64,000 nucleotides of DNA from Auanema rhodensis. Lineage: Eukaryota; Animalia; Nematoda. A model generated the notes under the pieces. The model made no database searches, had not been told where the DNA came from, and saw only the letters and a program-made list of their open reading frames with translations. Location: positions 8,804,001 through 8,868,000 of the forward strand of contig OZ059895.1 of assembly GCA_964057225.1 (NCBI GenBank). Reading direction: 5' to 3'. Both the position numbers and the translations under genes were made by a program. Position 1 is the stretch's first letter. Each line of letters opens with the position of its first letter. This document shows positions 13,495-25,202 of this stretch, in pieces.

Positions 13495-15089
13495 ATGCGC
13501 CTATTGATATTCTTTCTATGGTTTACGGGTATAACTAATGAACTTTATTAATCTGAATTCCTTTTCTTTTTGAGGCATAGCCGTAGAAGGTAAAATTGCT
13601 ATTATCGGAGAAGGTGTAATTGGTCTCTCAACGGCTTTGGCGATTAAGGAGTTCTCTCCCGAAGCTGATGTATCCTCTTTCGTCTTCGTTTTGGTATTAC
13701 GCACTTATTTACAGATAACAATTTTTCATGATCTTCCATTTGATAAAACTCTTTCAAGGAATATTGCTGGGTTATTTCGTATAGATAATGGCCAATACAA
13801 GTAAGATGACTAACAAAAATTCTAATGTATCATGTTCAGAGAATACGGAAACGCTACTTTTATCCGATTAGCTAAGCTTTGGAGAAATTATGGTGGATTA
13901 TCGGGAGTTCAACTTATATCTGGGCACATACTTTCTCGGAAACATAGTAATCTTGAAACACAGGTTCAAACTCGTCTTCTATTATATTTTTTACTTTCGA
14001 ATTGCTATTAAGAAAGATAATTACGCAGATATAGTTTATAACTTCCGGTACTTGAATGAAAGAGAGCTTCGATCTCAGTTCGAACTTCCCCAGGACGAGT
14101 ATGTATGAGATATTAGTTTTGCTAATTTTCAAGTTTAAGCGAAACTACACAAGCTATTCACTACACTGCATTCACCTCAGAAGGTGCACGTTACTGTCCA
14201 TGGATGAAAAACGAATTAGAGCAACAAGGTGTTCAATTTGTTATGAGATCTATAGCCTCACTAGACGAAGCAAGTTTTTTTCAACGTAAATTTAAAATGT
14301 TGCTAATTAGATCGCTGAAGATGGTTTTGATGTTGTCATTAACTGTGCTGGACTCAACGCTGGTAAATTATCTGGTGACGATTTTAGTGTTTATCCTATT
14401 CGTGGAATATTATTAAAGGTTTAACGTTCTTTTAAAAATAATCATTGTTTTCTTTAGGTTGATGCGCCATGGCAAAAACACTTTTTATACCGTGATTTTG
14501 GTACCTTCACTATCCCTATGTAAGAAATCATGAGCTCTTTTTCTAATACACTCATTATATTTCTTCATTCAGGATCGATTCTGTTGTCGTCGGCACTGTG
14601 AAACAGGAAAATGCCACTAGTGCTTTGTTGTCTGATGAAGAAAAGCATGAAATCTGGAATCGATACATTTCTTTGCAGCCGGCTTTCAAGGTGTCATCAT
14701 CTGAGGCATTTTCGTTATTAAACTTGTTCAGAATGTAAAAGTTCTTGGCACCTATGTCGGTTTTCGACCAGGACGTGAAGCAATTCGTCTTGAAGCCCAA
14801 TTGCGCATTACCAAATCAGGAAAGGTTTACAAGGTACCAAAGAAAATAAAGCGAATAAATGAGACATCGTTTAATTGTCTATATTAAGGCTATCCACAAT
14901 TACGGTCATGGAGGAAATGGGTTCACTTTGGGTTGGGGATGCGGTGAACATGCTGCCAGACTTGCTTTAGAGTTACCAACTGACCAGTAGGCCTTAAGAG
15001 CATGATCTAGTTTTATTTTTACTTTTAGATTTGATAGTGCTTTTAAGCTTAAACACCCTTCCCAAGAGGAAGTGGCTCGTCGACGATAG
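13495..15089 (+). CDS. ddo-3: D-aspartate oxidase, ddo-3-like, with signal peptide
   Basis: MRLLIFFLWFTG leader before KIAIIGEGVIG; [61 protein letters not shown]. No PTS1. Includes a GC-AG intron at 14270. The last intron is inferred; without it the stop is at 14990. Confidence 0.85.
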
Positions 15090-15389
15090 TTGTACAACTG
15101 TAACTTAATTTTTCTGTTCATAGAGCTCTGTATACTAATAAATGTTTCTGTTTTTTCGAAACTGACTTAATCTCCGTGGAAAAACAGCTTTATTGTATCT
15201 TAAAATCATCTGAATCGTGAAGTTCTTCGAAATTAAAACGTTTGCTTATCTGATGAAGAACATCAAAGTACGTTCTCTATTTTTAACTTCAAGTTTAACA
15301 GCAGGTTTATATGAATTATTTGTCGTTTCATTGTCAATAAATAATTACAATTATTAGTAAAATTCATTGTAGAGCGCAGTATCAAATAA

Positions 15390-18300
15390 TTATATAATAT
15401 TGAAGTGTTGACGGAATTGTTCAGAAAGCACAGGCTCTCCTTGTGTGTTGTCAACTTTTTTAATTCGTATGCATCTTTCCTTCGGTTTTTTTACCAATAA
15501 ACATGTGTCTCCTTCATTTTTAATCATATTTCCTACTTGAGATAGTGCTTCTGCTATGATGCTGAGCAATCTATTCGCAGGACAAACTAAATTCTTATCC
15601 AAATCATTCAAATATTTTTGGAACTCCTAAAAATTTATTTTGTACAAGTAACGGAGAAAGTCCAACCTTTTTTATTTTTCCATCTTTATCCCACTCTTCC
15701 AAATCAATCAAATATTGTTTGACTTCCTAAAAATTTATTTTGTACAAGTAACGGAGAAAGTCAAACCTTTTTTATTTCCAAAGATTTAATCCGCTCTTCC
15801 AAATCATTCAAAGACATTTGGTACACCTAAAATTTTATTTTCTACAAGTAACGGAGAAAGTCAAACCTCTGTTATTATCCCATCTTCATCCCACTCTCCC
15901 AAAAATTTTTGTAACTCCTAAAAATTTATTTTGTACAAGTAACGGAGAAAGTCAAACCTCTTTTCTTTTCCAATCTTTAACCAGCTCTTGAAAAAATTTT
16001 TGTAACTCCTAAAAATTTATTTTGTACAAGTAACCGAGAAAGTCAAACCTCTGTTATTATCCCATTTTTAACCAGCTCTTGCAAAAATTTTTGTAACTCC
16101 TAAAATTTTATTTTGTGCAAGTAACGGAGAAAGTCAAACCTCTGTTATTATCCCATTTTTAACCAGCTCTTGCAAAAATTTTTGTAACTCCTAAAAATTT
16201 ATTTTGTACAAGTAACCGAGAAAGTCAAACCTCTGTTATTATCCCATTTTTAACCAGCTCTTGCAAAAATTTTTGTAACTCCTAAAATTTTATTTTGTGC
16301 AAGTAACGGAGAAAGTCAAACCTCTTTTCTTTTCCCATCTTTAACCAGCTCTTGCAAAAATTTTTGTAACTCCTAAAAATTTATTTTGTACAAGTAACGG
16401 AGAAAGTCAAACCTCTGTTATTATCCCAGCTTCAACCTGCTCTTGCAAAATTTTTTGTAACTCCTAAAAATTTATTTTGTACAAGTAACGGAGAAAGTCA
16501 AACCTCTTTTCTTTTCCCATCTTCATCCCACTCTCCCAAAAATTTTTGTAACTCCTAAAAATTTATTTTGTACAAGTAACCGAGAAAGTCAAACCTCTGT
16601 TATTATCCCATTTTTAACCAGCTCTTGCAAACATTTTTGTAACTCCTAAAATTTTATTTTGTGCAAGTAACGGAGAAAGTCAAACCTCTTTTCTTTTCCC
16701 ATCTTTAACCAGCTCTTGCAAACATTTTTGTAACTCCTAAAATTTTATTTTGTGCAAGTAACGGAGAAAGTCAAACCTCTTTTCTTTTCCCATCTTTAAC
16801 CAGCTCTTGCAAAAATTTTTGTAACTCCTAAAAATTTATTTTGTACAAGTAACGGAGAAAGTCAAACCTCTGTTATTATCCCATCTTCATCCCACTTTCC
16901 CAAAAATTTTTGTAACTCCTAAAAATTTATTTTGTACAAGTAACGGAGAAAGTCAAACCTCTTTTCTTTTCCCATCTTCATCCCACTCTCCCAAAAATTT
17001 TTGTAACTCCTAAAAATTTATTTTGTACAAGTAACAGAGAAAGTCAAACCTCTTTTCTTTTCCCATCTTTAACCAGCTCTTGCAAAAATTTTTGTAACTC
17101 CTAAAAATTTATTTTGTACAAGTAACAGAGAAAGTCAAACCTCTTTTCTTTTCCCATCTTTAACCAGCTCTTGCAAAATTTTTTGTAACTTCTAAAAATT
17201 TATTTTGTACAAGTAACGGAGAAAGTCAAACCTCTTTTCTTTTCCCATCTTCATCCCACTCTCCCAAACATTTTTGTAACTCCTAAAAATTTATTTTGTA
17301 CAAGTAACGGAGAAAGTCAAACCTCTGTTATTATCCCAGCTTCAACCTGCTTTTGCAAAAATTTTTGTAACTCCTAAAAATTTATTTTGTACAAGTAACA
17401 GAGAAAGTCAAACCTCTTTTCTTTTCCCATCTTTAACCAGCTCTTGCAAACATTTTTGTAACTCCTAAAAATTTATTTTGTACAAGTAACAGAGAAAGTC
17501 AAACCTCTGTTATTATCCCAGCTTCAACCTGCTCTTGCAAAATTTTTTGTAACTTCTAAAAATTTATTTTGTACAAGTAACGGAGAAAGTCAAACCTCTG
17601 TTATTATCCCAGCTTCAACCTGCTCTTGCAAAATTTTTTGTAACTTCTAAAAATTTATTTTGTACAAGTAACGGAGAAAGTCAAACCTCTGTTATTATCC
17701 CAGCTTCAACCTGCTCTTGCAAAAATTTTTGTAACTCCTAAAAATCTATTTTGTACAAGTAACGGAGAAAGTCAAACCTCTGTTATTATCCCAGCTTCAA
17801 CCAGCTCTTGCAAACATTTTTGTAACTCCTAAAAATTTATTTTGTACAAGTAACAGAGAAAGTCAAACCTCTTTTCTTTTCCCATTTTTAACCAGCTCTT
17901 GCAAAAATTTTTGTAACTCCTAAAAATTTATTTTGTACAAGTAACAGAGAAAGTCAAACCTCTGTTATTATCCCATTTTTAACCAGCTCTTGCAAAAATT
18001 TTTGTAACTCCTAAATATTTATTTTGTACAAGTAACGGAGAAAGTCAAACCTTTTTTATTTCCAAAGATTTAATCCGCTCTTCCAAATCATTCAAAGACA
18101 TTTGGTACACCTAAAATTTTATTTTCTACAAGTAACAGAGAAAGTCAAACCTCTGTTATTATCCCAGCTTCAACCTGCTCTTGCAAAATTTTTTGTAACT
18201 TCTAAAAATTTATTTTGTACAAGTAACAGAGAAAGTCAAACCTCTGTTATTATCCCATTTTTAACCAGCTCTTGCAAATGATTCAAACACATTTGTTTTA

Positions 18301-20210
18301 GCTAAAAATTTATTTTGTGCAAGTAACGGAGAAAGTCAAACCTCTTTTCTTTTCCCATATTCATCCCTCTCTTCCAAATGATTCAAACACATTTGTTTTA
18401 GCTAAAAATTTATTTTGTACAAGTAACGGAGAAAGTCAAACCTTTTTCATTTTCTCAGATTTAATCCGCTCTCCCAAATCATTCAAATACATTTGGTACA
18501 CCTAAAAATTTATTTTGTAAAAGTAACAGAGAAAGTCAAACCTTTGTTATTATTCCAGTTTCACGCCGTTCTTCGAAATGTTTCAAATATTTTTCTTTCA
18601 CCTAAAAATTTATTTTGTACAAGTAACGGAGAAAGTCAAACCTTTTTTATTTTCTCAAATTTAATCAGCTTTTCCAAATGTTTCAAATAGTTTTCGTACA
18701 CCTAAAAATATATTTTGTACAAGTAACGGAGAAAGTCAAACCTCTGTTATTTTCCCAGTCTTAATCAGCTCTTCCAAATCATTTAAAGACTTTTGGTACA
18801 CCTAAAATTTATTTTGTACAAGTAACAGAGAAAGTCAAACCTCTTTTATTATTCCAGCTTCATCCCGCTGTCCAATCAAAAGTTCTTCACAGCCAACTAG
18901 GTAAGACTGAAGAAACCATTTTTTCAACTTCTTATGTTTTTTTTCAAAATTCGACTCTAATAATGTAGTTTTCAACTCTAAGTATTCACCATCTACAAAC
19001 AAAACAATTATCTATATAATACAAATTAAATTACTTGGCAACAAACAATCCACATCTCCTGCATAAAGAACTTTTATTGTTTTATTACTGGTACATATTG
19101 TTGATCGAACAACAGTGTTGAAATCTTCCCGACAATCAACAGGCACATCCGTATCAGGGACATCCTGAACAGAAAAAATTAAAATAATTCAAAATACGGG
19201 GCTGGTATCGTTTCGTCCACCCCCCCCCCCGGATCTGGGATAGAGCACTCCCGCTGGTTTATGCAAAGCTAATGCGTGCCCAAAATGTTATCTTAGATCA
19301 TGCGTTATTTACTCGAAAATACAGTCTCATTTCTGCGAGTTTAATACTTTTAAATTTTGTTGTTTTGTTGAAGCTCTCTCTATCTGGGGGGGGGATACCC
19401 ACAGAGACCCCCCGGATCTGGGATAGAGCACTCCCGCTAGTTTATGCAAAGCTAGTGTGTGCCCAAAATGTTATAAGCGCGCTCTAATGTTAACTCTCTG
19501 ATTATTAGGGGGGGGGGGATAGGCGAAACAATACCAGCGCCCAAAATACATATTGTTATACATACATGAATACTTTTACGGGAAGTTAGATATTGCTCGA
19601 ATTTAGAGCCATGATATGTCCAAAGCTTATCTTGTGCTGTTTCCTTTTCTTTTCTTAAACGAACATAATTAATTTTCATAAAAATTTATGAGAAACTTTA
19701 TTTTATCCTCAGGAGTTTCTATTTGGCAAATGAATACCAAACCGCGTTTACGAACTGCTAATGCAGTCCATGACTCCTCGGGATGACTAGTCGTACAAAT
19801 ACCAATTTTAGTTAGCATGCCCCGATAACACACAAATTCAGCTTCCAGGAGAGCCTATCAATAAAGATTGTTTCATTCAAACACTTCTTACTACCTTATT
19901 CAAGTTACCACCCGGAGGTGACTGTGTCATTATCCACTTTTCTAAGGTCTCCAAGTATTTCTCTTCGTTCTAATATAAGCTTTCATTTGAATATGATAAA
20001 CGGTTATACCTTTTCCACCCATGCTTTAGAATTTGTATTCAAATCTAGATTTGTTTCTTTATTGATGTTATCAACACAAACATATCTGGCTTGCATGCGA
20101 CCAAGAGTGATTTTTCGATCACTGTCATTGGAGAATTCACCTACTCTTATATATTTGAAAGATCTAAAAGCATGATATTTCCTTTCATAATCGGGAACAG
20201 TAACAGGCAT
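15390..20210 (-). CDS. dom-3: DXO/Dom3Z/Rai1-family decapping exoribonuclease paralogue A, with 34 extra tandem micro-exons (about 950 aa if all are included)
   Basis: FVCYRGMLTKI, YHGSKFEQYLT, LYAGDVDC, EYLELKT, KWFLQSYLVG, GQRDEAG. Then 34 in-frame exons between 18801 and 15667, then terminal exon 15626-15390 (EFQKYLNDL...FRQHFNII*). Confidence 0.85.
15627..18840 (-). repeat. Tandem array of exon+intron cassettes: 35 introns (39-40 nt) and 34 exons (25 of 51 nt, 9 of 60 nt)
   Basis: The constant part reads GTTTGACTTTCTCCGTTACTTGTACAAAATAAATTTTTAG on the minus strand, with exact 91-bp period from 15827 to 18011 and mostly 100-bp units at the ends. All variable parts are multiples of 3 and contain no stop codon. 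Confidence 0.95.
19198..19541. mobile_element. Non-autonomous DNA transposon (MITE), Merlin-like, in an intron of DXO paralogue A
   Basis: Terminal inverted repeats GGGGCTGGTATCGTTTCG / CGAAACAATACCAGCGCC (16/18 match, followed by C/G runs). 8-bp TSD CAAAATAC at 19190-19197 and 19542-19549. Internal direct repeat of about 65 bp. Confidence 0.8.
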
Positions 20211-20632
20211 ATTCGTATATCTAAATGTGCGAAAATAAAGTATATATATATAATATGCAAAGTATGATGTGAGATACACAAAAAAAATTTAAAAAACTAG
20301 TATAATTATATGCCGAAAATTTTATAATGTTAGCCTAGTCTAGCTAACAAAGTATGTATGCAGTTGCATTGAACAAAGATAAGAACACATACCTATAAGC
20401 TGATTAACCAAATTACTATTTATAAATTTTATTCGTTAGTTTATCTCTAAACCTACAATTATACTTTTATATTTTGGCTTATCTGATGAAGAACATCAAA
20501 AGTACGTTTTCTATTTTTAAAATCAAGCTTATCAGCAGGTTTATATGAATTATTTGTTGTTTCATTGTCAATAAATAATTACAATTATTAGTAAAATTCA
20601 TTGTAGAGCGCAGTATCAAATAATTATATAAT

Positions 20633-21011
20633 TATAAATAAAACTTTAAGCTAATCTAGCTTGATAAGTACAAAATTATGAATAAAACTTAAAGCTAATC
20701 TAGCTTGATAAGTACAAAATTATGAATAAAACTTAAAGCTAATCTAGCTTGATAAGTACAAAATTATGAATAAAACTTAAAGCTAATCTAGCTTGATAAG
20801 TACAAAATTATAAATAAAACTTTAAGCTAATCTAGCTTGATAAGTACAAAATTATGAATAAAACTTAAAGCTAATCTAGCTTGATAAGTACAAAATTATG
20901 AATAAAACTTAAAGCTAATCTAGCTTGATAAGTACAAAATTATGAATAAAATTTAAAGTTAATCTAGCTTGATAAGTACAAAATTATGAATAAAACTTAA
21001 AGCTAATCTAG
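20633..21011. repeat. 44-bp minisatellite, about 8.5 copies
   Basis: Unit TAAAACTTAAAGCTAATCTAGCTTGATAAGTACAAAATTATGAA; GCTAATCTAG-like cores at 20650+44n up to 21002. Confidence 0.95.
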
Positions 21012-22457
21012 ATTGAAGTATTGACGGAATTGTTCAGAAAGCACAGGATTTCCTTGTGAGTTGTCAACTTTTTCAATTTCTATATCTCTCTGTTTTTTTA
21101 CCAATAAACATGTGTCTCCTTCATTTTTAATCATATTTCCTACTTGAGATAGTGTATCTGCTATGATGTTGAGCATGCCTTTCGTAGGACAACGTATTTG
21201 GTAACTCAAATCATTCAAATACATTTGGTACACCTAAAAATTTATTTTGTACAAGTAACAGAGAAAGTCAAACCTTTTTTATTATTCCAGCTTCATCCCG
21301 CTGTCCAATCAAAAGTTCTTCACAGCCAACTAGGTAAGATTGAAGAAACCACTTAAAACACTTGTTTCGATGCTTTCGAAAGTCCAATTCTCCTTTTTGA
21401 GTTTTCAACTCTAAGTATTCACCATCTACAAACAAAACAATTATCTATATAATACAAATTAAATTACTTGGCAACAAGCAATCAACTTCTCCTGCATAAA
21501 GAACTTTTATTGTTTTATTACTGGTACATATTGTTGATCGAACAACAGTGTTGAAATCTTCCCGACAATCAACAGGCACATCCGTATCAGGGACATCCTG
21601 AACAGAAAAAATTAAAATAATTCAAAATACGGGGCTGGTATCGTTTCGTCCACCCCACCGGATCTGGGATAGAGCACTCCCGCTAGTTTATGCAAAGCTG
21701 GTGTGTGCCCAAAATGTTATAAGCGCGCTCTAATGTTAACTCTCTGATTATTAGGGGGGGGGGGGATAGGCGAAACAATACCAGCGCCCAAAATACATAT
21801 TGTTATACATACATGAATACTTATAGGGGAAGTTAGATATTGCTCGAATTTAAAGCCATAATATGTCCAAAGCTTATCTTGTGCTGTTTCTTTTTCTTTT
21901 CTTAAACGAACATAATTAATTTTCATAAAAATTTATGAGAAACTTTATTTTATCCTCAGGAGTTTCTATTTGGCAAATGAATACCAAACCGTGTTTACGA
22001 ACTGCTAATGCAGTCCATGACTCATGGGAATATCCAAACCCACAAGTACCAATTTTAGTTAGCATGCCCCGATAACAGACAAATTCAGCTTCCAGGAGAG
22101 CCTATCAATAAAGATTGTTTCATTCAAACACTTCTTACTACCTTATTCAAGTTACCACCCGGAGGTGACTGTGTCATTATCCACTTTTCGAAGGTCTCCA
22201 AGTATTTCTCTTCGTTCTAATATAAGTTTTCATTTGAATATGATAAACGGTTATACCTTTTCCACCCATGTATTAAAATTTGTATTCAAATCTAGATTTG
22301 TTTCTTTATTGACGTTATCAACACAAACATATTTGGCTTCCTTGCGACCAAGAGTGATTTTTCGATCACCGTCATTGGAGAATTCACCTACTCTTATATA
22401 TTTGAAAGATCTAAAATCATGATAATTCCTTGTATCACCGGAAACAATAACAGGCAT
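21003..22457 (-). CDS. dom-3: DXO/Dom3Z/Rai1-family decapping exoribonuclease paralogue B (7 exons, about 344 aa, canonical motifs)
   Basis: FVCYRGMLTKI (motif I Arg), YYGFKFEQY (motif II), GEVDC (motif III), ELKT (motif IV), KWFLQS (motifs V/VI). Lies 363 bp downstream of the mes-3-like gene on the same strand. Confidence 0.92.
21631..21788. mobile_element. Shorter copy of the same MITE in the equivalent intron of DXO paralogue B
   Basis: Same TIRs and CAAAATAC TSD (21623-21630, 21789-21796). Has only one copy of the internal direct repeat. Confidence 0.8.
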
Positions 22458-22819
22458 ATTCGTATATCTAAATGTGCGAAAATAAAGTATGTATATATAA
22501 TATGCAAAGTATGATGTGAGATACACAAAAAAAATTTAAAAAACTAGTATAATTATATGCCGAAAATTTTATAATGTTAGCCTAGTCTAGCTAACAAAGT
22601 ATGTATGCAGTTGCATTGAACAAAGATAAGAACACATACCTATAACCTGACACAAGAATGATAACAGTTGGGAATTAATTAAACATTGTAAGTACAATAT
22701 AGGAAGGCAAGAGAAAGAACTATTGACCTTATAGGAGATCTTATTTAATTAAACATTATAATTAAAATACACAAAAGTAGTTTAGGACTTGGGTACGCTC
22801 AATTACTCAATAATAATAA

Positions 22820-25202
22820 CTATGAAAGTGAGAGTAATAACTGATACATATCATTGGCGCTAATTATATCGCCTATAAAGCATTGATTCAGGAATGTAGT
22901 TAGAAGACTCACAAGTTTCTCTTTCTTAATCCAGTCTTTATTTATCCTTATGAATCTTTCCTAAGAAACCAAATTACTATTCGTTAGTTTATCTCTCAAC
23001 CTACAATTTCAAGACGTTTCATTTTCTTCGAAACAGGCTGATGTTTTGTGTGATACGCGAAGAATATATCGAAGCGCTCCATAAACATTTTTTCTTTATC
23101 AGTAGCATCAATAAATTCCCAGATTCTCTGTAAAATATGAAATTGTTTTAAAATTTTTAGGCATATCTCTCACTCTGTGTGTATTGTCGGCATACCAACC
23201 ACAGCTAGGACGGTGAAGAACAAACTCTTCACCTGGATATAAATTCATTCTAAACAAACGTTGATATAAACAAAACAAATAATTCTCAATTACGGTTCAC
23301 GGATAATATTAGCAAATGGCATGCTCATATAGGGAATTAATCCGGGTTCCCATTTTTTTTTTTTATTTTTAACTGCAGGGACCACTGGATCTGTTACGAC
23401 TCTGAAACATTTCAGAATATATAAATGAAAGAAAGTTTAATACATACTTAACAGAACAAGATCCTTCTGATATAGCAATAACATTGGGAGACTAAAAGTG
23501 AATTATACTTTAAAATAGGAATGGAAAACTGAAATACCTCAAGTCTGAATGAAAGCTTACTGAACATTGCATTTAAATATTTTATTAAATGGTTCGTGTC
23601 GGGGAAAGTTTTCAAAGTAAAAGGACAGGAAATACTGTTAACTCCGACAAAAAATCTAGAAGCAGTTTTACTGACTTCTGTAGGTGCTCCATTTTCTTTA
23701 TTGGGCGAGCCGGAAATTTTATCCAGGACAAAGCTGAACAAAACTTTTAGTACGGTAACAAAATAAACTTTTTACTGGAGTTTACATTCCCTGGATGGCG
23801 TAGAAACCCGTTCTTTTTCCCTATGTCTCATATCTTTCTCAATATCTTCCCAATCTTCTTCAACATGTTGATCAGAAGTTTCGAAATTTAAAGATGGCAT
23901 AGTTGTCTTAACACTAGTAGCATGAGCTAGTTGGCATAGTTTTTGAATTTTTTCTAAATCGTCTTTCCATGTTTCTCTATCCAAGTTAAATGGCAAATTC
24001 AATATACCGTCATTACGTCTGAAAAAAATTTCAAATGGTTTGAAATGTGATAAGATATTACATACTCTAATAATATCGATCCATTCATATGCTTTACTTC
24101 AAGTTCATCATTTTTTCGTTGCATAATTTTCTTCACTCCATAAAACGTTTTCTGAAACGAAATTCTATCCCTTTATAAATACAACAAAGCTTACTAATTC
24201 TGTACTCTCTTTTGAAGAAGATCTGGATGCTCGCTGACCCCTACCCTTTCTTCTATCTTCAAAAAAATATTTCTTGCATAAATTCAAAAATATAAACACC
24301 TTTATTTTCATTCACACATACTCCGCGGACAGTACAAACCAAATATACCACTCTAAAGTATTAAACGATTACTTACATTATAATTTATCAACTTACTCAG
24401 CGGATTTTTGGAGTTCAGAAGGAACAGGATAATAAACTACATTTTTACCAACTTCATATTTGGCACAGCTTATTTTACCACGGAAAAGGGAATTCTAAAA
24501 GCAACTCCTTGTCTAGTGCATTTTTATATAACATACTCTATTAAGAACTTTTTTATTCGAGTCGAAGGATACCAATTTTATATCAACATCCACAGTATCT
24601 ATACTTCCTGAACAAATAAAAAAAACAATAAATAAAAACAAAGGATTTACCGGAGCCAAGAGGATCGACAAAATTGAAAAATTCAAAAGTAGTGATTTCT
24701 TCTAGTCCCTTTTGAATCTATACAAAAACCAAAGATTATATCAAATCAATATTAAAACAAACCGCATCTTCAATACGCTTCACCGTCGCAATGCGTTCAT
24801 TAGTCATTTCAACAGAGCTTTTACCTCGTTTGATAACTTCATACTTTTGATAATCATGGTAATGAGTATATTCATTAAAAATATCTTAAATATTTCAAGA
24901 TGTAAAGTTAGTGTTGTAATCACCCACCCCTAACATTGAAACGTGATGAATTTTTTTTTTTGGAAACAATTCCTTTTCCATTATTTTCGATGGTAGCTAG
25001 ACAAAGAGTAATTATTATTGAAAATTATATAAAAAATAAAGATACCTTTAAGAGGGTTATTAAGAATTTTAGGACGTTTTTCCGAAATAGCAGTCTAAAA
25101 TAATTGTGTAAAAGATGGAAACACAACTAATCGAAAAGAGTATATGATAATAACACAAGAATAACTTGCCTCTGAAGCGTACTTTAATCGTCCTCTTTTC
25201 AT
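22820..25202 (-). CDS. mes-3: PRC2 subunit SUZ12/MES-3-like protein with VEFS box
   Basis: Continuous spliced frame from MKRGRLKYASE (GC donor) to MYQLLLSLS*. Degenerate Zn-finger-like SCPFTLKTFPDTNHLIKYLNAMFSKLSF. VEFS-like WYADNTHRRIWEFIDATDKEKMFMERFDIFF..ERFIRINKDWIKKEKLVSLLTTFL. Directly upstream of dom-3 homologues. Confidence 0.75.

Follow-up and report, generated by a model that had tools for sequence, protein, structure and literature searches.

The 64,000-nt stretch of the nematode Auanema rhodensis examined here (hereafter the window; GenBank assembly GCA_964057225.1, contig OZ059895.1, positions 8,804,001 to 8,868,000 of the forward strand) contains two tandem genes of the DXO/Rai1 family, one of which, gene A (window positions 15390..20210, minus strand), carries in its C-terminal part a large array of minute exons separated by copies of a single 40-nt intron. 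While the introns of this array are nearly identical, the exons are three to seven times as diverse and are built as mosaics of a few alternative blocks. The explanation favoured here, which is judged somewhat more probable than its opposite on the sequence pattern, is that short-tract gene conversion or unequal exchange has acted together with accelerated or diversifying change of the coding segments of this derived DXO copy, and that these segments then escaped homogenisation.

The whole cassette array spans 15627..18840 on the minus strand in units of 91 or 100 bp, and Tandem Repeats Finder calls it as a 91-bp tandem repeat at 15826-18855. It consists of 35 GT..AG introns (GTTTGAC...TTTTTAG), of which the first is 39 nt and the other 34 are 40 nt long, and of 34 exons, all in phase 0, numbers already given in a preliminary description of the locus and borne out by the anatomy of the array. 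Twenty-five exons are 51 nt long (17 residues) and nine are 60 nt long (20 residues). The longer exons lie at the array edges (exons 1-6 at 18242..18801; exons 33 and 34 at 15667..15826), except for exon 8 (18051-18110), which is identical to exon 33. The core of the array, on which the preliminary description was centred, extends over 15867..18201, from the end of exon 32 to the start of exon 7, and contains all the 51-nt exons together with exon 8. Only one frame is open across 34 of 34 exons; the other two contain stops, and retention of an intron would bring an immediate stop codon (GTT TGA).

The contrast between exons and introns is seen in both parts of the array. The introns show a mean pairwise identity of 96.3% (nucleotide diversity, pi, 0.037), with 8 of 40 positions variable, four of these as singletons, plus one 1-nt deletion, in agreement with the early remark that they differ at only a few positions. 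Among core units, 17 of 51 exon sites but 5 of 40 intron sites vary (exon pi 0.119, intron pi 0.037), and the proportions of nonsynonymous (pN) and synonymous (pS) differences are 0.1425 and 0.013. The 100-nt edge units are older and more divergent, with 37 of 60 exon sites and 6 of 40 intron sites variable, an exon pi of 0.254 against an intron pi of 0.0375-0.05, a pN of 0.27 and a pS of 0.19-0.21. Per-site diversity differs between exons and introns in the core (Mann-Whitney, p=0.009) and in the edge units (p=6e-7). The preliminary description held that almost all exon differences change amino acids, and in the core this is true of all 17 variable sites; the probability that none of the 17 would be synonymous is ~0.02. 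The comparison of nonsynonymous with synonymous change which it had proposed thus gives modest evidence from the core, and in the older units pN/pS is only ~1.3-1.4.

The core exons encode 16 distinct peptides among 25. Position 5 is F (15 exons), I (5) or C (5); the middle block is QELV+KD, QELV+KN, QEQV+EA or GEWD+ED, with QELVEA, QKQVEA and GKWDED each found singly; and the end block is GIITE (14) or GKRKE (10). Further variants are E or K at position 1 and the singletons FF and WKRKE in exon 31. The blocks and their many combinations are exactly those first described, and the proposal that recombination or conversion shuffles them between units is supported. In the four-gamete test 68 of 136 informative site pairs fail, giving a minimum number of recombination events (Rm) of at least 5 within a 91-nt unit, and linkage disequilibrium falls from an r2 of 0.40 at 1-6 nt to 0.04 beyond 30 nt (rho=-0.51 with distance). 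Of the 17 sites that vary in the core, 13 have both alleles in common with the older edge units or the ancestral flanking sequence. Together with the mosaics, this sharing argues that the combinations are reshuffled founder variants and not recurrent new mutations, the founder segments being an ancestral-like G.(R/W)DE(A/D)GII.E and the derived QELVK(N/D) and GKRKE. A simple higher-order repeat does not account for the combinations, as the order of core units is near random for similarity and neighbouring units are not significantly alike. A few 182-bp dimers do recur in the core (exons 23-24, 27-28 and 29-30).

Two other arrays show which half of this contrast is unusual. The first, measured identically, is an array of FG-repeat cassettes that lies 323 kb away within a GLH/Vasa gene (L013:1517-3603; C3:9191016-9193102), with 21 units of a 43-nt intron and a 57- or 48-nt exon. 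Here the exons (pi 0.064) are less diverse than the introns (pi 0.091), which is the conventional order and the reverse of that in the DXO array. The second is a noncoding 44-bp tandem array of 8.8 copies between the two DXO genes (20630-21016), whose 96% matches are about equal to the identity of the DXO introns. It is inserted directly after the stop codon of gene B, and beyond it lies homology to the 3' flank of gene A (20540-20640 versus 15290-15389). The DXO introns are homogenised at most ~2.5 times more tightly than those of the GLH control, while the DXO exons are 2-4 times more diverse than the control exons. The introns are therefore homogenised to an ordinary degree, and it is the excess diversity of the exons that stands out. 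The idea that the introns had been homogenised is thus correct as to the fact (96% identity), but not as to their being the special part of the array.

The array reading frame is under selection, as the preliminary description had supposed. At least 65 exon substitutions have produced no stop codon where 5.05 would be expected (P=0.005), and exons are either 51 or 60 nt long, so that all length variants are multiples of three. Public sequencing data show in addition that the array is transcribed and spliced. Fifteen runs contain this stretch, and one putative RNA run (X11) and three DNA runs (X2, X4 and X7), which carry three organism labels, were compared over 17955-20300. One RNA contig (depth 34.5) joins exon 5 of gene A to array exons 1, 2, 3 and 4; it skips 39, 40, 40 and 40 nt between them, each skip bounded by CT..AC on the plus strand. 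The same run contains the skip of the 42-nt intron 4 of gene A and contigs that confirm junctions 2|3, 3|4 and 4|5; junctions 2|3, with its AAG acceptor, and 3|4 are reproduced by loose ends as well. Two further RNA loose ends (ATTTTTGTAACT, at 18150 and 18241) correspond to exon-exon junctions leading into core-type exons. No spliced joint of gene A or the array was found in the three DNA runs. Contigs carrying A-specific patches (see below) occur in the RNA run with no mismatches, showing that gene A is expressed alongside gene B, whose contigs are also found there. These data largely refute the view that the array is an artefact of assembly or annotation, that is, a collapsed or mis-polished noncoding satellite with a chance open frame. 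Nothing speaks for such a view except that 3 kb of 91-bp repeats are in general hard to assemble, and it can hardly be upheld when the RNA contigs skip exactly the predicted introns and the DNA runs do not, when DNA runs from four studies and under three organism labels contain the stretch, and when one frame stays open in every exon with the absence of stops noted above.

Other signals in these runs were set aside. A 339-nt RNA skip that would suggest exon skipping is most likely gene B mRNA placed on gene A, since the last exon of gene B begins with the same 27 nt as array exon 4. A 140-nt skip (18201>18342), with a side of 25 nt, joins the end of exon 5 to the start of exon 7 and omits exon 6 in frame; it may be a real skipping isoform or a core e17|e18 junction placed on e5/e7, and was not counted because of this ambiguity. 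Gaps in RNA coverage such as the one over exon 8 were given no weight, as constitutive exon 2 has one too. In the DNA runs of organisms B and C, array exons 2-3 (18508-18744) have little or no contig depth, whereas organism A covers them. This hints that the array edge differs between close relatives, although a contig hole alone proves nothing.

The second line of evidence for unusual exon change comes from the comparison of gene A with gene B (21003..22457, minus strand), the canonical paralogue, which lacks the array and adjoins gene A immediately upstream. In noncoding DNA (four introns and 190 nt of 5' flank) the two genes differ at 6 of 644 positions (0.9%), while in exons pN is 9.2% and pS 6.7%, a pN/pS of ~1.4; the difference between nonsynonymous and noncoding sites is highly significant (Fisher, p=2e-12). 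Exon differences are clustered in short patches in which up to half of the nucleotides are changed, as in TLLESNFEKKHKKLKK versus QKGELDFRKHRNKCFK. Patches lie near 20150-20200, 19790-19815 and 18890-18945 (18841-20210 compared with 21274-22457), and the last of them has ~24 changes in 50 nt. The A-type and B-type sequences of patch 1 are unchanged in the DNA runs of all three organism labels, so that the A/B split predates the separation of the samples, which appear to come from very close relatives.

The main rival explanation reverses the emphasis and places the constraint in the introns. The exons would encode a dispensable, loosely constrained linker that drifts almost neutrally with only its frame preserved, and the 35 minimal introns would be under purifying selection, because the C-terminal DXO segment can be produced only if splicing is efficient at every one of them. 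Several observations agree with this. The pN/pS ratios of the edge units and of A versus B are compatible with neutrality, and between A and B synonymous divergence exceeds intron divergence. A length of 40 nt is near the lower size limit in gene A, whose other short introns measure 42 and 43 nt, and the array introns contain invariant stretches (positions 1-3, 5-13, 15-21 and 36-40). However, the control array, with 21 serial 43-nt introns, tolerates an intron diversity above that of its exons. Moreover, the other noncoding DNA of A and B, including introns of 155 and 215+ nt and the 190-nt 5' flank, is equally ~99% identical, so that no constraint special to the array intron is needed. Drift also sits poorly with the complete lack of synonymous variable sites in the core, and an exon divergence of 25% would imply an age far above that suggested by the 0.9% divergence of A/B noncoding DNA. 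This account is consequently regarded as rather unlikely.

A less probable possibility still is that the segments were switched by a templated or exon-targeted process with little selection, either by copying patches from a diverged donor missing from the assembly or through an exon-directed mutational mechanism. The changes do occur as multi-nucleotide blocks with sharp borders within otherwise identical DNA, as in the patch at 18890-18945, and synonymous and nonsynonymous sites change together, a pattern that resembles the 'accelerated segment switch in exons' of snake toxins (PMC2474615). Yet no donor is visible. A search of the genome for a third RAI1 paralogue that might have supplied the divergent patches returned A and B only, and the array intron is found nowhere else. 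Every patch also keeps length and reading frame, and most of the core variants can be traced to units of the same array.

Taken together, the confinement of divergence to coding segments, in 34 exons as well as in the A/B patches, is more than chance would produce and, as far as sequence can indicate, fits positive or diversifying selection on the surface of a DXO paralogue. The favoured combination of exchange and accelerated coding change could operate as follows. Unequal crossing-over and short-tract gene conversion would pass sequence between misaligned units. Identity between units extends furthest over the intron and ~17 flanking nt, so that exchange should start and remain there, keeping the intron homogenised. 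Where heteroduplex reached into an exon it may have been repaired in short patches, which would create the block mosaics and the very short range of linkage disequilibrium. Such patchy repair would recombine a few old founder variants, namely G.(R/W)DE(A/D) versus QELVK(N/D), GII.E versus GKRKE, and F, I or C at position 5. The coding segments of gene A presumably changed faster than neutral DNA and, once diverged, escaped homogenisation.

Several points weigh against this interpretation. Synonymous sites between A and B are raised ~7-fold over introns, which amino-acid selection alone does not explain and which fits old or templated patches, or intron constraint. If multi-nucleotide blocks are counted as single events, the excess of nonsynonymous change in the core has a P of only ~0.06-0.09. 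The ratios of the older edge units, like that of A versus B, are not distinguishable from neutrality. The single unambiguous RNA contig links only the first four array introns. Finally, any immune context for the array gene is borrowed by analogy from EOL-1 of Caenorhabditis elegans, a different paralogue.

The origin of the array can be read from gene B, as the sequences show that it arose by a 100-bp tandem duplication spanning one 40-nt intron. A 31-mer from the intron occurs 36 times in the 181-Mb genome, 35 times in the array and once in gene B, which thus retains the single ancestral intron (21234-21273) together with both flanking exon ends. Joining the start of the last exon of gene B to the end of its exon 5 gives a virtual unit, VYQMYLNDL+GQRDEAGIIKK, that matches the pattern of the edge exons (for example, LKQMCLNHL+EERDEYGKRKE), and from this likeness the unit is traced to a duplication across the intron. 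By the same comparison, the duplication created an in-frame chimeric exon of 60 nt, in which 27 nt from the start of the downstream exon are followed by 33 nt from the end of the upstream one, and the 51-nt unit is a later derivative, with a 9-nt deletion, whose copies multiplied in the middle of the array. The identical exons 8 and 33 (18051-18150 and 15767-15866) are both preceded by a rare intron variant with G at intron position 25 and A at position 34, and two copies of one older segment flank a core of 24 units. A scan of 15000-23000 against Rfam returned no RNA family and so offers no sign of a known functional RNA within the intron. The intron motif CTGTTAC bears some likeness to the upstream motif of nematode Piwi-interacting RNAs, a lead that was dropped because of two mismatches.

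The identity of the host genes is well supported. Exon 5 of gene A matches the Pfam RAI1 profile (PF08652) with an E-value of 4.9e-10 and 39.6 bits, and that of gene B with 41.4 bits, the curated cut-off being 26.8; in a genome-wide search the scores are 56.8 bits for gene A and 62 bits for gene B, the only RAI1-family genes detected by the profile. All matches in the PDB are to Rai1, Din1 or DXO. The five 5' exons of gene A (20210-20010, 19854-19697, 19653-19566, 19164-19035 and 18992-18841) precede the array, and the last of them aligns to residues 237-284 of Schizosaccharomyces pombe Rai1 (YVELKT...FLLG...GFRDDNGI), retaining the ELK motif and a KWFLQSYLVG...GQRDEAGI segment. The array thus enters after residue ~284 of the 352-residue S. 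pombe chain (3FQD_B). It is followed by a last exon (15390..15626; 78 residues and a stop), which supplies the C-terminal portion of the DXO fold and has its homologue in the last exon of gene B. An exhaustive protein search with these 78 residues gave no matches and hence no orthologue from another species for comparison. The gene models, which have GT-AG borders and stay open throughout, predict proteins of 926 residues (243+605+78) for gene A and 319 residues for gene B.

DXO/Rai1 enzymes carry the catalytic motifs G-h-x-h-E, E-h-D and E-h-K. In gene B these read GFKFE, EVD and ELK. In gene A they read GSKFE, in which the G and E are retained, DVD, in which the first acidic residue has changed from E to D, and ELK. 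With these two substitutions (19600-19615 for GSKFE and 19060-19075 for DVD) and its slightly lower RAI1 scores, gene A is, on sequence, the more derived copy. The E-to-D change is accompanied by two adjacent synonymous changes within 12 nt. In both genes a 43-nt intron (gtttctc...gtttaag; 19654-19696 in gene A, 21901-21943 in gene B) ends in a non-canonical-looking AAG acceptor, which is used, as the RNA loose end at exon 2|3 demonstrates. Intron 3 of both genes contains an inverted-repeat element bounded by C and G homopolymer runs (19226-19540 in A, 21600-21800 in B), the gene A copy being 186 nt longer. The depth of this element in the DNA runs reaches thousands, so that it belongs to a high-copy family resembling miniature inverted-repeat transposable elements (MITEs); contigs of it are also present in the RNA run.

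The predicted product of the array is rich in E (18%), K (16%), L (14%) and Q (10%) and contains no proline; local statistics give a charged fraction of 0.41 with near-zero net charge and a hydrophobic periodicity of 4. The segment ELQKFLQELVKD has a strong helical amphipathic moment (0.66), and in each unit an apparent amphipathic helix leads into a G-turn and then a short tail of one of two kinds, hydrophobic (IIT) or basic (KRK). An insert of ~605 residues would come after the strand ending in ...GQRDEAGIIKE and ahead of the 78 residues that close the DXO fold, and to judge from its composition this insert is most likely a multivalent binding or scaffolding arm and not a new catalytic element. 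A bolder proposal gives an immune-type DXO nuclease a variable arm for recognition or binding, in which diversifying selection would keep many 17-residue helical variants and, in the manner of Dscam, a repertoire of in-frame isoforms would be attached to an enzyme of RNA 5'-end surveillance. With introns alike and every exon in phase 0 and of a length divisible by three, the frame would survive the joining of any donor to any acceptor, and the in-frame skip of exon 6 is compatible with such a repertoire or with a misplaced core contig. This proposal is nevertheless considered distinctly improbable.

The locus separates two processes that are usually joined in coding tandem repeats, the homogenisation of introns and the diversification of exons, and it does so in a genome that provides a built-in control in the form of a conventional cassette array. 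C. elegans has 10 DXO homologues, among which EOL-1 is induced by viruses and stress (PMC7735679). Should the diversity of the exons prove adaptive, a variable helical arm of 600 residues would have been added to a nematode DXO paralogue, which, given the tie of EOL-1 to antiviral RNA surveillance in C. elegans, would offer a tractable case of how enzymes of innate immunity acquire binding surfaces. If the diversity is neutral, the array nevertheless illustrates cleanly, in a natural setting, how segments can slip out of concerted evolution over distances of tens of nucleotides.

Several known systems share part of this architecture. Gene A has in common with the DXO/Rai1/Dom3Z family, including C. 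elegans EOL-1 and dom-3, the RAI1 match, the ELK motif and the aligned Rai1 segment, and C. elegans, too, is known to have tandemly duplicated DXO genes. However, the internal repeat insertion of ~600 residues has no equivalent among the PDB matches and the DXO literature consulted for comparison, and the DVD and GSKFE motifs depart from the EVD and GFKFE of the canonical copy. The GLH/Vasa array is a product of the same building process, in which a ~100-bp unit of a short intron and a small exon was amplified ~21 times with in-frame exon variants of 48 and 57 nt, but intron diversity there exceeds exon diversity. In genes for spider silk (flagelliform spidroin; Argiope MaSp2), too, each repeat is encoded in one exon and the introns are copies of each other, ~94-99% identical within a gene, and unequal crossing-over guided by these repetitive introns has been proposed as the homogenising mechanism (PMC9779670). 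The repeats of the DXO array are likewise bounded by copies of one intron, whose identity falls within that range. In silk genes, however, the exons are homogenised with the introns, whereas here they are diverse and mosaic; moreover, the DXO units are tiny (exons of 17-20 residues, 40-nt introns) and their host is a nuclease, not a fibre protein.

Repeat proteins that read nucleic acids are a less apt model. TALE, PPR and PUF proteins consist of tandem helical units of 33-36 residues, in each of which one to three residues set the specificity on an otherwise fixed scaffold. The DXO array likewise has tandem, putatively helical units with variable residues, a likeness to recognition repeats that had been pointed out at the outset. 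Its units, however, are only 17 residues long and vary at 11 positions (1, 5, 7-12 and 14-16, with singletons at 6 and 13), with hydrophobic-to-charged swaps such as IIT/KRK and LV/WD, which does not amount to a constant framework carrying one or two residues of specificity. The sequence thus does not support a recognition code of the TALE type. The closest described parallel is found in the paralogous toxins of snake venom, in which introns are highly similar and short exon segments are radically replaced, altering surface and charge (PMC2474615, PMC2711939). The patches that distinguish gene A from gene B and the alternative blocks of the array match this pattern, and in both comparisons, A versus B and unit versus unit, noncoding DNA is far more similar than the clustered coding segments. 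The toxins, however, are secreted and encoded by separate genes, whereas in the DXO array the segments vary, and have been recombined, among tandem units of one gene for an enzyme of intracellular type.

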